A stretch of 63,996 bases of DNA, counting the filler, from Lenisia limosa (taxonomy: Eukaryota; Protista; Breviatea), in the NCBI GenBank assembly GCA_001655205.1. It is 9 parts of 9 records of this genome, joined end to end, with 100 filler letters (N's around TTAATTAATTAA, not from the genome) between each part and the next. Parts side by side here need not be neighbours in the genome. Positions count along the whole stretch, not along the records: positions 23,537 to 29,816 come from LPNZ01010170.1; 8 more parts are not named here. One strand, 5' to 3'. The number at the start of each line of letters is the position of its first letter. Positions within the stretch are counted from its first letter, which is position 1. The translations under genes were made by a program, and so were the position numbers. The notes under the pieces were generated by a model. It was not told the DNA's origin and made no database searches. It saw only the letters and a program-made list of their open reading frames with translations. Below are positions 3,604 through 29,816 of this stretch, piece after piece.

Positions 3604-5251
3604 GAAGGTCTGTGAACTTCTGTGGTTTGTACTTCTCCACCCACAAGCCGTCCTTAACTGAAAAAATTACACATAGTCTGTTGTGAAAGGTCCCAGATAC
3701 GATGAAACAAAATCCTGAAAGAGTATGATCCTCGTTTCTAGGGCTTTACTTCGGTTCGGAAAAGACCAGTCTTTTTCCAAACTGAAGTGAAGCCCTTCTC
3801 GTTTCCCATCCACACTGACTGCAAAACCACCAACCACTAACCATCATCACCAAACACCGCCAACCACCCCAGCACTTGCACGCCAACCACCCCAGCACTT
3901 GCACGCATACCTGGGAAAAGGCTGTCTTGGATCGCACTAAACCGGATCAGTAAAAGAAATTTCGGATATAAAAAGAAACAAAGCACGTAACATTGATTAA
4001 CAAGAATGGTTGGGGCTTCCCTACGGTCGAAAAAGACCGATCAAATATCGATATTTATCGAGGATTTATCGAGAAATTCACTCTTTTTTGGGACCGTAGG
4101 GAATCATTAAATATCTTATGATAGTGTAACAAAAGCAGAAAAAGTAATGAGTATCTTGCCTGTGTTTATTCCACCCCCCCCACCCCCGCGTCCTTTACAC
4201 TATACAGTGACCGGGATAAGTCTTGTCCGATTTGTTATGATTTAAAAAGGAAAGTCATCAAAACTTATTTAGGTCATATAGAGATGAGAAATAAAATAAA
4301 GATGTATCTGGCCGAAGCTGTCCACACCATTACGCTCATAAGGGATTGGATTATTGTATAATACTAATAAGCTCTCCCACATTCGTTCGAGATAGTCGCA
4401 ACGAGATTGGCGCTAAAGTCAATAAAAAAGTGAAGGCAAGGGGGAGGGATAAAACGTAAAATGGGAATGAAACAAAAAAAAAACGTAAAATAAACACTGT
4501 GAAGAGAAAACCAAAGGAAATCTCGATGAAGGGTCCCAAACAATCCAATTTCAATGAAAGCGTTTTCAAGGAAGAAACCGACTCTTGACACCAACCAGTT
4601 TCTCCGCCTTCTCCATGATATCGTCAACGTTTGTTGCTGTCAGGGGGTCTGAAGAAATAGGGACATCTTTAACCTGAGGGACTTCATCCGACAGGTAGAG
4701 CCTCAACCCTGTCATGTTAGTGGTGTTTTAAATTCCATGTCTGCCCGCTGTACCCCTAGAAAGATGAATGAGAATATATTGCTTCTCTTTTGCTAATTAT
4801 AAAATTGAAGGGAGCGACAGCGCAGTCCAGACAATTCCGACATCCAATCCGGACTTTTTTTTTCAACCTGACTTGAGTGCTTCATGTTCGGAGCCTAATT
4901 GATACTCCAGTTCGAAAAAGCCCGATAAAATATCGAAATGAATCAAGGATTTATCGTGAAATTCAGACTTTTTAAGAACCGAAGTGAAGCAATACACACC
5001 AGTAGCACCAACCATTTCCGGTCGTGATTTGAAGGAAGGACTTGACTTTTGGCCGGATATTGGCAACGCCCCTAGTCTGAGGGGTTAGCTCTGATTCACT
5101 ACCTATCGCCAAACACCACCACTGTTCTTACTCAACGTCAATAACACATTGGGACCATTCCTACCTTCGTGGAGTATTTGAACCTTCTGTCATCCTGCTT
5201 TTCCGGTGTGTCTTCATCTTCCACAACCCCGAAACCGGTTTTCGCAGCAGG
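3604..5251 (-). CDS. CTF18: CTF18 (RFC-like clamp loader large subunit), N-terminal part, truncated by fragment end
   Basis: Exons give SFLQITTG..GLRLYL..DPLTATNVDDIMEKAEKL then KDGLWVEKYKPQKFTDL (RFC-family LWVEKYxP box); the long N-terminal segment with a GxRxYL motif fits CTF18 better than the small RFC subunits. Confidence 0.7.
3739..3797. mobile_element. hAT-type MITE, family 1 (59 bp) with perfect 8-bp TSD
   Basis: tagggctttacttcggttcggaaaagac...gtctttttccaaactgaagtgaagccctt flanked by ctcgtttc at 3731-3738 and 3798-3805. Confidence 0.85.
4011..4109. mobile_element. MITE family 1, variant subfamily
   Basis: tggggcttccctacggtcgaaaaagac...gggaccgtagggaatc; internal sequence matches 18481-18580. 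Confidence 0.7.
4278..4350 (-). repeat. Dispersed repeat, family 2
   Basis: Reverse complement tccaatcccttatgagcgtaatggtgtggacagcttcggccagatacatctttattttatttctcatctctat in a CTF18 intron. Confidence 0.8.
4874..4994. mobile_element. MITE family 1, degenerate
   Basis: Internal gaaaaag...atatcg...ggatttatcg and right TIR aaccgaagtgaagc. Confidence 0.55.
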
Positions 5252-5394
5252 CTAAAAAGGGTAAACAAAACAAATTTAGGCTACAATAAGAAATAAAACA
5301 GGGTAGCTTCAGAACGAAGCCTCGAAACCCCAAAATAATGTTGTTTGGACTATCGCTGCAAAAAGGTAGGATGCAACATATATACGATATATAT

Positions 5395-5434
5395 ATAGCA
5401 ACGGGAAATAAAAAACAAGGTTTTATCTGGCCGA
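5395..5434 (-). repeat. Dispersed repeat, family 2 (3' half, cut by spacer)
   Basis: Reverse complement tcggccagataaaaccttgttttttatttcccgttgctat. Confidence 0.6.
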
Positions 5435-5534
5435 NNNNNNNNNNNNNNNNNNNNNNNNNNNNNNNNNNNNNNNNNNNNTTAATTAATTAANNNNNNNNNN
5501 NNNNNNNNNNNNNNNNNNNNNNNNNNNNNNNNNN
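5435..5534. other. Artificial contig-joining spacer
   Basis: N-flanked ttaattaattaa at 5479-5490. Confidence 0.97.
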
Positions 5535-23536: not shown

Positions 23537-25370
23537 ACTTCTGGCAAGGGCCCTAACCGATGAATACTTCAATGTAGTGGAGGATGCAATCAAGCAGCTG
23601 GGCGAGGTAGATGCTAAAGGCCTTTTTGTCATTAGAGACCCCAACTCAACAAAAGAATTGGAAAATACTCTCTTGAATATCTCAACTTAGATACGAATAC
23701 CGGTTAGTAGAGCTGGCCTTTGTTATGTCTTTGATAATTACTTCTGATAAGTTAGAGGATCAAAAGTTTCGTGAGCAGATGCTACCAACCTCTGAAGGTA
23801 TATAGAGATGTGTAACTTTTCTCTTTTTTGTCTGATGCAGTGGTGGTTTATCACATTTGGAGTAATACACTTCATTTGAATTCATTCCACTCTTTTGTAC
23901 CAATATTCAAATAACTACGATGCAACAATCAGAATGAAGCTCTAAGTCGAAGGACAGGAGGTAGAGCTGATAAATGAAATGCCCCTTTTCTTCCCAAAGA
24001 CATGGCGACTGGCAACGCTCTGTGTCCGATCGGATGACGGAGCTTTGAGAGGGCAGCAGTCAGTCCTCAATGACCTACAGTTATTTCAATTGTTACTGTT
24101 GCGATGCAGGCGATCTGTCTTGGATCTCCATCCAAAGAATGCATGTTGAAAGATGTCTCATTTATCTTTTGGTTTTCACCATTCAAGATTATATTCACGT
24201 TTTCAAACGGTGCAGATTCCTCGTGATGCGCAAGGAGGTAGCTCTTCTCTGCGATGAATGTGGGTAAGTCCAAAAAACCAAATGACCGTTTCTAATAGGG
24301 GTTCTGATCCTCAATTCGTCCCTAAAGCGCGCGAGTTCTTCTCTCCAGAGGTGATATCTAAGTTAGAACTTAGTGGTGAACATGAAGCTGCCAATTTTGC
24401 AAAGGCGGTTTCCAAACTCCATCAGTCTCACGACAAAAGAGGATTATCTCTGGCTCAAAGAATTTTCAAAGGAAGCAAATACATTATTTTCCCGCTATGT
24501 TAATGTTGGAGGGGATTTCATGAATTTCAATTTCATAATAGCGTCAAGAGTTGAACAATGTAACTAGTACTATTTAAAAGCACTAACCTTAGTTAGCATG
24601 AAGACGCCAACGTCTGCAATTTGATGTTTGACTTAATTGCATCGAGGTGATACCACTCCTCAAGTACAGAGTACCACCTGTGAGTTTACTATGGTGTACA
24701 CTTTCTCATGTCTAACATATTAGAGAGCACAATCAATTAGGAAGTTCCAACTCATGATTTTAGTGCCCACCTCCGGTACAGCTCCAACCACATCCAAAGC
24801 TCGACGACGATCAGGTAAGTATTGGTTTACTCGCTTGTTCATAAAGAAATAATACTCATACTTTTCTCATTTTCCAACTCTCAGAGTACAAAAGTAGACA
24901 GCCAAAAATAACTCATGACTTTAGCGCCCACCTGAGCCTGAGCATACTGACTTGACAACCTTGGTATGCGTTTGAATTGGTTTTTTTGTTTTTGAATCCA
25001 TAAATTGCCAGATGCATGTGTTTTCATTATCTGAAACAATGATGACTGGGTCACCACTCTTTGAAACTTCTTAATGGTTAGGCTAAAGCAGTTGTTTTTT
25101 GCGTGCTGACAAATGTGAACGACTCTTCTCGCACATCCACAGCGGAGCATCATGATGAAGGTGCTCAGGGTGCACTTCTTTCGAATCAGCCCGAGTGCCG
25201 ACTGGTATTTCATCACGTCACAACGTAAGACCTACATGCACCTCCCCCTAGACGCCAGAGTGGTCACGTAAACAAAGAACACTGCACTAAAGATCAAGCC
25301 GTCACGGGAGCAGAAGCAGGTCTCCACCTCAAGTCTTACGCCCAGAGACAACAAATGCAAAAAGGTGACA
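23537..25370 (+). mobile_element. Degenerate P-element/THAP9-like DDE transposase
   Basis: In order: LATLCVRSDDGALR (~24030), DYIHVFKRCR (D-x2-H motif, 24187), DPQFVPKAREFFSPEVISKL (insertion-domain motif, after the 35-nt intron 24264-24298), DKCERLFSHI (final Glu motif, 25108); frameshifts and stops are needed to join them. Confidence 0.6.
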
Positions 25371-26267
25371 TCTGCTTAATGTATGTATTGTTATGATTTG
25401 TTTTGTTTTGTATCTGTTACTGATGTAATAATTGTTTCTGTGTGAAAGTAGTCATATGATATATTGTTCAATGGGGTTTTCAGTGAGGTAATATGCCACT
25501 TTTGAGTTTAGGTCACGCAAATACTCTCCCCATAATATTCTTATCCTACTGGTGCTGTTTCACTGATTTGTTTGGCACAATACAGTTCAAACCAACATTG
25601 GTACAATTGCTATGCAAGAATTACAAAATATGGATAACTGTATGAAGTAGTGCCTAAAATTCAATATCAAACTCTATAATTACAGAGCCCTAGTTATTAA
25701 TTATCTAAAAAATAAAGCGAGGCAAGATAAAATGGGACTGATTCAGCATTTGTGGAAAATATACAACCTAAGAACTCCTTGATGGTACTGATGATCCCTT
25801 TCCTGGCATTGAAGCGGTGAATACTAAGTCTTAAATATGGAAAATTATGAGTGTAAGTCTTTATTGAAGTAAATATGGGTCTATAAAGAGTAGAGAAGGC
25901 ACATAAACACCGTTAACAGAGCATCAAGGAAACACTGTTCGACCTCTTTCCCCACCTTCTCCATTGATTTACAATGACTATGACTTATAACCTAACAGCG
26001 AATAATTGAAGTATTTTAGCGTCTACCCCCTTTCAATGTCAGAGATCTCGCCGAAAAACAATTTAACAAAGATACGTTACATTATTTTAAAGTTGCCGGA
26101 CAGTTGGAGTATAGTTTTAACATGATAAGTTGAGAAAAAGTGACCCCATGCCATTTACAGTCGTCGAACATTGAAAAACACAAATATAAAGCTGGAAAAG
26201 CAGAAGAGGGACAAAAACACCGCAGGATGTCAAGAAACTTCCAAAAAGAAATGCATTAAGGACAAAA

Positions 26268-27255
26268 CTAAAGATCCTGAGAAACGGACCACACCCTAAT
26301 AATGCCATCAGAGAAGCCAGCAAACAAACTGCCACCATCGGCAGACCAAACAACAGAGGTGCAAACTGGCAGTTTACCGTCAACAACCGGACGTAAAACT
26401 GTTAAAGGAGCCTTCTTTTCGAGGTCAAAAATGACAACACTATGATCAGTAGCTGCACAAAGCCAGTAACAAAAGGGAGAGAAAGCCAAATCATTAATAG
26501 GTGCTTTCGCGGACATAGAATATAAATGAGACATTGACTCAGAGTTATCCCATAAATGAGTAACACCGTCCTTGTCCCCTGAAGCTGTAATGGAACCATC
26601 TGGAGAAACAGCAACAACATTTACTTGATTAGAAGGAGCAACCAAAGTTTGCTTTAACGAAAAAGTTTTTAAATCCCAAACCTTGACCTTTTTGTCCCAG
26701 CCACCCGAAATAATTTGAGGCGAAACGGTGGAACCAGGGGTAAAACATAAGCTACTAATCCAATCACTGTGACCATTTTCTTTCAAAGTCGCTTTGCATT
26801 GTCCTAATGTGTTCCCAATTAGTATAAATAATAATACCAGAGTTTAATCGTTTTATCTCTTGAAGAAGAGACAATTTGCCTATTATCTGAAGAGAAGGCT
26901 ACACTCAAAACATCTTTTTCGTGCCCAACGAAAGTAACAGTAGATTTTCCAGAATTAAGGTCCCAGAGTCTAAGAGTCTTATCCCATGAGCCAGTTAACG
27001 CAAACAAAATTAAACAAAGAAAAAAAATACCTGACCATCCGAGGAAACAACAACACTTTCCACGAAATGTGAGTGTCCAACAAGAGATTTATGCGCGTAA
27101 CCAGCTTCATTGTTTTCTTGAGGTTGAAGGTGCCAGACTACCACTGTTTTATCTCTTGAACCACTCAGCAACACCTGAGGGTTATTAGGTGCTACAGCTA
27201 AAGAGGTGATTCGGCCGTTGTGACCGGTCAAAGTTCCAGAAAGACGAAAAGACAT
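26268..27255 (-). CDS. RACK1: RACK1 / Asc1 (7-bladed WD40 ribosomal protein), 312 aa, 3 exons: 27255-27031, 27004-26838, 26814-26268
   Basis: [20 protein letters not shown]...LLSGSRDKT...[16 protein letters not shown]|[16 protein letters not shown]...SRDKTIKLW|[17 protein letters not shown]...YWLCAAT...[10 protein letters not shown]; 939 nt once two tiny non-AG introns are removed; TAG stop. Confidence 0.93.
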
Positions 27256-29816
27256 TTTGAAAAAGGCAAAATCCTAATTTCAGAAAATATTAAAAATACA
27301 ATTATAATCGGTATTTTCAAGAAAACCCGTGATTTATTTTTGACATTTAGTTTAACTATGAGCATTTATGAGTCAAAGTAGGAATTCACAAGACCATCAA
27401 ACGCCACTTTTGAAAATTGCTTTGATTGAACTCTGCTATGGCAAATAAATTTTGATTGGACTCTTAATTCTAAGAACAAGCTTGCGTAAGAGGGAGTTTC
27501 CTGGTGTGGTTGGCTGCTTTTCTTAACGAACTGCGTCCCTTCTTTAGCTCTTCTAAATCACCTTAGGTGAACCTGGTAAACAAACTTGTTCCCACTGCTG
27601 TCAAAAAAGATTCATTTGAGTAGAACCAATAGGGCGGATTGTTTGAAGAGCGCTGATTATTTTTGTAAGAAGTGTGTATTTGTTAACCTATTTTTTAACT
27701 GGCGTGTATTTTACTTTGGCTTATAATAGATCGTAACTGAGCCCCCCCCCCCCTNNNNNNNNNNNNNNNNNNNNNNNNNNNNNNNNNNNNNNNNNNNNNN
27801 NNNNNNNNNNNNNNNNNNNNNNNNNNNNNNNNNTGTAATGTTGTTCTAATATTTATAGATGGAAGGAGAGGCTGATTTTATCAGTACTGACGCTTAGTTT
27901 GAGAAATGCGCAAACGTGGTTTTGTGCAGGTAATTAGATAACCTTCAGGCCATTTCCAGTACTGGCAACAAAGCAGGGATTGACAGGGCTATCAAGAAAG
28001 TGGGATGCCGCAGTTTAGAAGAGATTTGATTCCCTGAAATCTTCATACTACACCCTGCCTGTTCGATTCTCCTTTTCACTGGCCAGTGGTCTTTATCAAA
28101 GATCTTTGTCCCTTGTGCATTTTGCCACTCTGAAGTGCTGGGAGGCGGCCCCCAGGTCACCTTGCCCTGTCCCGCGACTCCCCGACGAATCCTTACACTA
28201 ATATTTTGCTCACATCTAGTGTGAGGGCTATGTGACTTTCGTCTGATACAAGATGTACATGCATGTATCATAAGTATTCACATAATATCACTCGTACTAC
28301 TGAATGTACTGATGCATCCTTATTGTTTATTTCTCATTGTTATATATTATTATGAATGTACTATGTATTATGTATATTTTTATGATATATGTTTCTTTTT
28401 CTTATTTTTTTCGACTAATCTTTAACAATATCTCTTTTGTTAAAACTGCGAACATGATGATATATTTAAAACCGCGAACATGATTAAAGCCGCGAACAAA
28501 AAGGAGGCTTTTCTTTCAATTTTTGAGTCATTACGCTCCTTATTTACGCCTATTTCGCATTTTTTGCAAATTATCGCCCGAAACACTCCTTTATACAGGG
28601 TTTTATTCATAAGAATAGGCAGGGGTATCAACATCCATGCAAAATACCACCTTCATGGTACTTCAATTTTTCATGCGAAATACATTAAAAACACTGATTA
28701 TGGGCCTAGAATGCCCCTGCGATAAAGTGAAGACATTCTTTCACCCACTCTTGAGTAACCTAGAGGCATTTAAGTAGAGAATACGAGACAAATTGGGCAA
28801 AAAATGAGCGTAAATTACCGATAAATGGGCGAAAATATGATAGAAGATGTTAATAAATCAAGCGAATTTGACTCTTACCTTGTGTGCCGTTCCAAACGGT
28901 AAATGGGTTATTGACGCAGCATATACTTTAATCAGACGTCTATTTCGTCCATTGGCTCCATTATAGAGACTGAACAAAGAAAATTCTTGACAAAACCGTG
29001 ACAAAAGTTGACTTAAATACCTCAAAATCACTACATTTTCTCCAAAAATAAACTTCAGATTCGAATTCTCCTTAAAAATCTGTGTTTCTATAGTGGGGCA
29101 CTTTAATAGGCTCAAAATGCTATTATTCTGAAAGAGGGGGGTTTCAAAAAATAGTTTCGCGTAAAGGAAACTGGGTGACCCCGGCCGGATTCGATTCTGA
29201 TCAAAAGATATTTTTTTTTCAATTTTTGTATCTCACTTTTTTTCTTCTTTTTGCTCCTTTGTTTTGATGTTGTTGATAGTCTAGTACTCAAAACTGCCGA
29301 ATTTCCCACTAAAATGGGTGTTATTGAAATTGCACGACAAGACAGTTGGTATCATCACATATTCTTCACTGTTTAGATTTGAAAAGGGCAAAAAAAAGCA
29401 TTGGAAAAGCGTGAAGCTCGTAATCAAATGATAAAACATATGGTGATTTCTAAGTTTTGTTGACTGTATTTAGAGAAGCATCGCAAAAAACCAAGGCAAA
29501 CGGTCTAAAATCTTCTAATACCTTTCATTACCTCAATTAATTATGTCTAATGCATTTTATGAAAGCGTATAATTGTTATCTGAAAACATTGTGGTTTTCC
29601 TTGTTGACTTTCTTTAAAAAATTGACCTTTTTATGAAGTGGGTACGGTTATGTGGGGTCACTATGATATAGCTATAGACATGTATGTTTATGTGTGAAGG
29701 GTATATAGGTGTGTGGTGTGCGTGTTTGTTTGTATGTTTGCCCAACCATCTGAGTTGATGTGTTTATCACCCCCACCCCCAAGTATGCGCAGGTGAAAGG
29801 GTGTGCCCCCCCCAGT

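Follow-up and report, generated by a model that had tools for sequence, protein, structure and literature searches.

In this DNA, the highly expressed, ribosome-associated gene RACK1 is interrupted by two inserts of 26 and 23 nt that are present in genomic DNA and are precisely missing from mature poly(A) RNA, and a 3' AG is absent from both in every alignment register. Given the RNA evidence, which is at the level of assembled contigs, we consider it fairly probable that the spliceosome accurately and efficiently excises both inserts although they end in TG and GG, which would make them mini-introns that form a size class of their own (23 and 26 nt). The window is the whole stretch of DNA that was analysed (63,996 nt), and the piece examined within it spans positions 23537-29816.

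The RACK1 gene and its two inserts

The gene lies on the minus strand and is made up of the following parts, in window coordinates.

27031-27255, minus strand: RACK1 exon 1, with the ATG at 27255-27253 and 75 codons, the last residues being ...DGQ; covered by the RNA contig from 27188 downward
27005-27030, minus strand: mini-intron 1, 26 nt, GT..TG (other register GG..TT); left out of RNA, kept in DNA
26838-27004, minus strand: RACK1 exon 2, FALTGSWDK...IKLW, ending in phase 2 within a Trp codon; covered entirely by the RNA contig
26815-26837, minus strand: mini-intron 2, 23 nt, GT..GG (other registers GG..TG and TA..GG); left out of RNA, kept in DNA
26268-26814, minus strand: RACK1 exon 3, stop codon 26270-26268 included; reached by the RNA contig down to 26388

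When 27255-27031, 27004-26838 and 26814-26268 are joined, they form 939 nt that encode an intact RACK1 of 312 aa, and it is the removal of both inserts that restores the frame of this conserved protein. The initial annotation had read the gene in this way and had claimed in-frame stops and lengths that are not multiples of 3 for the inserts; the sequence agrees, given that both inserts carry an in-frame TAA and are 2 mod 3 in length. The protein aligned end to end with the RACK1 of a coral, a mucoromycete and a chytrid and was gapless at both junctions. Pfam WD40 matches were found in all three exons (3/3), and the top database and PDB matches of the gene were RACK1/Asc1/Cpc2. The host gene thus has the seven-bladed WD40 architecture and the approximate size (~315 aa) of RACK1, and it is collinear with the RACK1 of other eukaryotes.

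The protein is nevertheless strongly diverged. A search of 5.8 billion proteins returned closest RACK1 relatives at no more than about 54-58% identity, and in a 25-taxon tree the terminal branch measured 1.64 substitutions per site versus a median of 0.17. This branch fell outside all of the sampled groups (fungi, plants, green algae, an apusomonad, a nucleariid and a coral). Fungi led the PDB ranking slightly, a profile-free search of 1.8 billion representatives was crowded by giant WD40 proteins and yielded nothing useful for RACK1, and a protein atlas contributed no further information. The divergence points to a very fast-evolving and probably parasitic lineage that is without a close relative in the protein collections searched. 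Among candidate lineages compared with the literature, Amphiamblys was rejected because it has no introns and a GC content of 50%, mikrocytids because their introns are of 16-17 nt only, and other Ascetosporea because of their GC content of 24-33%.

Read on the minus strand, mini-intron 1 and its context (27030-27005) are ...GGTCAG, GTATTTTTTTTCTTTGTTTAATTTTG and TTTGCG..., and mini-intron 2 and its context (26837-26815) are ...CTCTG, GTATTATTATTTATACTAATTGG and GAACAC.... Mini-intron 1 follows codon 75 in phase 0, and mini-intron 2 lies inside codon 131 in phase 2. Both begin with GTATT in the preferred register, a GT start of the GTRNGT-like U2 type, and both end in G. The junction of mini-intron 1 can be shifted by 1 (giving GG..TT) and that of mini-intron 2 by -1 or +1 (giving GG..TG or TA..GG). 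No AG occurs inside mini-intron 1 or mini-intron 2. With the junctions fixed by RNA, the ends are TG and GG and not the AG of U2-type introns. Mini-intron 1 is T-rich, with A residues only at positions 3, 20 and 21, and its only candidate branch A is A20/A21, 5-6 nt from the end in the motif TTTAAT; mini-intron 2 contains TACTAAT, the last A of which is 4 nt from the end. These branch-like motifs, TTTAAT and TACTAAT, were recognized by sequence alone, and the putative branch A at -6/-5 is where the initial annotation had described it. Neither insert position is shared with the RACK1 genes of a coral, Phycomyces (a mucoromycete) or Rhizophlyctis (a chytrid), and because the positions are unshared with these three genes, the mini-introns may be lineage-specific gains.

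Evidence for removal from the RNA

Two public runs of one study contain the locus, a DNA-like run (X1) and a poly(A) RNA-seq run (X2); the DNA (S1) and the RNA (S2) are different samples of that study and are labelled metagenome/metatranscriptome. The depth of X1 was even, at 39.8, across genes and spacers, and an X1 contig of 3548 nt crossed RACK1 unbroken at the same depth as its flanks. The number of X1 contigs with either deletion was zero. An independent metaSPAdes assembly (ERZ3820729 NODE_3050) was identical over 23537-27754, both inserts included. The bases at both insert ends, for which a base-call error had been considered, are therefore correct, given that the 40x DNA and the two assemblies agree.

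The X2 RNA contig is 778 nt long with a word depth of 6629, and it spans 26388-27188 with 0 mismatches (752 nt of exon at 100% identity). It differs from the DNA only in two gaps, one of 23 letters at 26814 and one of 26 letters at 27005. X2 had zero depth in the flanks of the RACK1 gene, and the contig is therefore a transcript and not contaminating DNA. The RNA support for both removals consists of this one assembled contig, which shows the dominant form. The two RACK1 introns without a 3' AG that had been proposed from the DNA were thus confirmed as exact gaps of 26 and 23 nt; in the X2 contig the transcripts are not unspliced, and both junctions are joined as predicted. The initial annotation had also pointed to two downstream AGs, and these are located where it placed them. 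Use of the AG at 26805-26804 would produce a 34-nt intron and a frameshift, and use of the AG at 26979-26978 would cost 27 more bases (FALTGSWDK) in frame. Neither of them is used in the dominant RACK1 transcript.

We considered that the gaps could be an artefact of mis-assembly, of template switching by reverse transcriptase or of assembler collapse. Many of the non-canonical "introns" of <65 nt recorded in databases arise as artefacts of alignment or of reverse transcriptase (PMC4463651), and the insert junctions do show microhomology of 1-2 nt. However, template switching would need microhomology longer than these 1-2 nt, the two deletions are exactly those that restore the conserved frame, they represent the dominant form at a depth of ~6600, and the DNA is identical in two assemblies, all of which makes an artefact extremely improbable.

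A difference at the DNA level is also very improbable in our judgement. Here, RACK1 would be insert-free in the cells from which the RNA came, whether because S1 and S2 are polymorphic, because the inserts are precisely excised in somatic cells or because a second, intronless copy exists, and expression would not come from the copy with the inserts. The DNA and the RNA do come from different samples, the DNA and a neighbouring transcript disagree at 24146-24148, and contigs drop rare variants. Even so, the exons of the RNA contig are 100% identical to the DNA over 752 nt, and the DNA contig runs unbroken through RACK1 at flank depth with no insert-free path. An unexpressed insert-bearing copy would amount to a dead single-copy version of a near-essential gene, and the loss of both inserts together by polymorphism is unlikely. 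In addition, the insert ends are not TA..TA in any register, unlike in Paramecium-type excision. Internal eliminated sequences of the ciliate type were rejected as candidates, given that the inserts are not TA-bounded and are present at full depth in the DNA with no insert-free contig.

Ordinary introns and other features of the piece

Five further introns in the same piece are supported by RNA.

24505-24596, plus strand: ordinary intron, 92 nt, GTTGGA..AG; RNA joint 24504>24597
24680-24763, plus strand: ordinary intron, 84 nt, GTGAGT..TTAG; RNA-supported
24815-24924, plus strand: ordinary intron, 110 nt, GTAAGT..TTAG; register +2; RNA-supported
24964-25081, plus strand: ordinary intron, 118 nt, GTATGC..TTAG; register +1; RNA-supported
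27672-27858, plus strand: ordinary intron, 187 nt in the scaffold but 152 nt once the gap is given its true 44 nt, GTGTGT..ATAG; joint 27671>27859, depth 4

These neighbours are 84-187 nt long, and all are GT..AG with 3' ends of TTAG or ATAG and a branch-like CTAAC, CTCAT, TTAAT or CTAAT located 7-11 nt before the AG. The expectation that the other introns would be GT-AG therefore held for 5/5 of the RNA-supported ones in the piece. A 3' AG is present in 5/5 of the longer RNA-supported introns versus 0/2 of the tiny ones (Fisher exact 1/21 = 0.048, from a small sample). These five GT..AG introns show that normal introns, and a normal spliceosome to remove them, exist in this organism. The genome is not uniformly one of tiny introns, given the size and the normal signals of these neighbours, and the RACK1 pair (n=2, in one gene) is a distinct class in size and signal and not the norm of this genome.

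The first four of these introns belong to a spliced poly(A) transcript at 23620-25476 on the plus strand, together with 5098-5511 on the minus strand of the metaSPAdes contig (L001); its contig is 1454 nt at a depth of 20, with four GT-AG introns. A 137-aa ORF that weakly resembles HEAT repeats begins outside the piece and terminates at about 23690, and downstream of it the transcript contains no long ORF. The transcript either has an exceptionally long 3' UTR that holds four introns or includes an independent non-coding RNA that the contig has fused to it. At window positions 24146-24148, the RNA contig reads CCA and the DNA TTG, and these three adjacent differences suggest either that RNA and DNA were taken from different clones or that there is a local assembly error.

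The low-depth plus-strand transcript that contains the intron at 27672-27858 lies just upstream of the RACK1 start and points away from it; no ORF was recognized in it, and it is probably a divergently transcribed neighbour of RACK1. The 79-N gap at 27755-27833 is really 44 nt, given that an X1 contig and L001 both cross it with an identical stretch of that length. Positions 28217-29620 are a dispersed high-copy repeat with a DNA word depth of ~10,000 versus ~40 in the single-copy flanks. The repeat is not tandem and matched no Pfam family. A further contig of the metaSPAdes assembly, in which no recognizable gene was found, carries one copy of the repeat's ORF that is 79% identical (L005:7264-7506). 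No further conserved coding gene was found in the rest of the piece (23537-29816), nor were any tRNA genes or tandem repeats found in the piece, and the sole Rfam match there was to a snoRNA model at 23778-23850, with 24 bits, far below the gathering score.

Mode of removal and comparison with known systems

We favour removal by the spliceosome because both inserts have a GTA start, a branch-like motif and a terminal G and because a spliceosome is evident in the same genome. In the mechanism that we propose, U1 and U6 would recognize the GTA 5' end, and U2 would pair with the branch motif. Since the 3' end lies only ~5 nt beyond the branch A, the nearest G within reach of the active site would then be ligated in the second step. 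A contact between G(+1) and G(-1) is seen in post-catalytic spliceosome structures. The terminal G of the inserts would preserve this contact, and the contact between A(-2) and the branch A would be given up. The ordinary introns of the same genome keep their AG, 7-11 nt past the branch-like motif. Against this reading stand the number of cases, two introns in one gene, and insert positions that are unshared with the three other RACK1 genes. The distance from the branch to the 3' end, 4-5 nt, is at or below the values described for other tiny introns.

A U12-type-like intron, or another distinct spliceosome-dependent class with a variable 3' dinucleotide and a 3' site set by distance from the branch, could explain several of the same features. 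Non-canonical U12-type introns of human and mouse include 8 cases of GT-GG and 1 of GT-TG (PMC1557818). Both inserts start with GTAT, as in the U12 5' consensus RTATCCTT, the motifs TTTAAT and ACTAAT are similar to the U12 branch site TCCTTAAC, and a short distance from branch to 3' end is found in both inserts. However, the 5' ends, GTATTTTT and GTATTATT, depart from the consensus, with TT and TA at +5/+6 and not the near-invariant CC, and the inserts are far shorter than any described U12-type intron. U12 introns typically have a branch-to-3' distance of about 10-15 nt, and the branch-like A of the inserts is only 4-5 nt from the end. We therefore regard this class as very unlikely.

Removal outside the spliceosome, by an endonuclease and an RNA ligase (as by IRE1/RtcB on XBP1/HAC1 or by TSEN on bulge-helix-bulge introns), would fit ends that do not resemble GT-AG on the 3' side and insert positions that are not conserved. 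All four cuts come after a G, and the insert lengths coincide with those of the XBP1 intron, which measures 26 nt in mammals and 23 nt in flies or worms. We still judge this explanation very improbable. The folding energies of the junction regions and of the inserts equalled those of shuffles (z-scores of 0.28 and -0.25), and no paired stem-loops, bulge-helix-bulge or end-pairing hairpin was found. Each of the four junctions departs from the IRE1 loop consensus CNG|NNGN at 1-2 invariant positions, and RACK1 is not a stress-switch mRNA. Moreover, endonuclease/ligase systems have no need of the GTA start and branch-like motifs that are present in both inserts. Euglenid nonconventional introns, like IRE1 and tRNA-type introns, resemble the inserts in that their borders are not GT-AG and they can be short. 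However, these introns need end-pairing, a stem-loop or a bulge-helix-bulge, none of which is predicted in the RACK1 inserts, and the 5' GTA and branch motif of the inserts are spliceosome-like.

Returning to spliceosomal removal, a broader form of the reading is that the lineage has a regular class of ~20-30-nt mini-introns in which the 3' boundary is the first suitable G at a fixed 4-6 nt past the branch A (GT-NG), and that AG-independent ligation is normal and efficient in it beside GT-AG splicing. We hold this generalization only tentatively and as rather doubtful, since it extends to a whole lineage from two introns of one gene.

Few signals in eukaryotic gene expression are as invariant as the 3' AG, which is read twice, early by U2AF and at exon ligation by the catalytic core. 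On our best reading, the inserts belong to a known type of spliceosomal mini-intron, but what would be new is the productive use of non-AG 3' ends in a highly expressed gene. If this is true, productive splicing at TG and GG in an essential and very highly expressed gene would offer a handle on how the substrate of the second step is chosen. This would apply above all to the weight of branch-to-3' distance relative to base identity, and the case would also reveal the extent to which the spliceosome can relax during intron miniaturization. A blind spot of gene predictors that accept GT-AG and GC-AG only would also be exposed, as such introns would be invisible to them and the genes would be split or called pseudogenes. 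Predictors limited to canonical sites would miss such introns, and RACK1 is itself an example, given that the gene caller of the public assembly split it into separate ORFs of 81 aa and 172 aa. BRAKER3 is likewise assumed to model canonical splice sites only.

Tiny introns have been described at 25-30 nt in Porospora gigantea, about 20 nt in Babesia microti, 22-27 nt in myxobolid myxozoans and dicyemids and 16-17 nt in mikrocytids (PMC9250747, PMC13644364, PMC6543705, PMC10245619), and microsporidia, Paramecium, Stentor and the nucleomorphs of chlorarachniophytes hold them as well. In the gregarine Porospora, they form a class that has a consensus to itself, with an A ~6 nt upstream of the acceptor, and that occurs beside longer introns (PMC9250747), and the geometry is similar in myxobolids and Dicyema (PMC13644364). 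The RACK1 inserts match these classes in their range of length, in a 5' signal cut to GTA and in a likely branch A ~5-6 nt from the 3' end, and in Porospora, myxobolids and dicyemids, as here, tiny introns coexist with longer ordinary ones. The difference lies at the 3' end, which is TG or GG in the RACK1 inserts, whereas the ends in myxozoans and Dicyema are stated to be AG, in the myxozoans from an annotation made with BRAKER3, an automatic gene predictor (PMC13644364). No non-AG end is mentioned for the tiny introns in the other three reports (PMC9250747, PMC10245619, PMC6543705), and the literature searched contained no account of tiny introns in which the AG is regularly missing.

The GT-TG and GT-GG introns of mammals are rare conserved exceptions, mostly of the U12 type (PMC1557818). 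These functional exceptions, which include the U2-type GT-TG intron of ARS2 and U12-type GT-GG and GT-TG introns, share the terminal dinucleotides of the RACK1 inserts and likewise keep the terminal G. However, they occur singly among long introns that number in the hundreds of thousands and whose other signals are strong, whereas in RACK1 both introns of the gene deviate and measure only 23-26 nt.

In yeast that lacks Prp18 or Fyv6, 3' sites close to the branch come into use that bear little resemblance to YAG (PMC11651659). As with the RACK1 inserts, ligation there takes place at non-YAG sites near the branch, which shows that the catalytic core is capable of it once second-step factors or proofreading are relaxed. 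In yeast, this is a mutant phenotype that yields minor aberrant isoforms, whereas in the RACK1 gene described here it would be the normal, productive route of a highly expressed gene. Because of this likeness to yeast without Prp18 or Fyv6, our analysis suggests a lineage in which the proofreading of the second step may be relaxed at very short distances between the branch and the 3' end.
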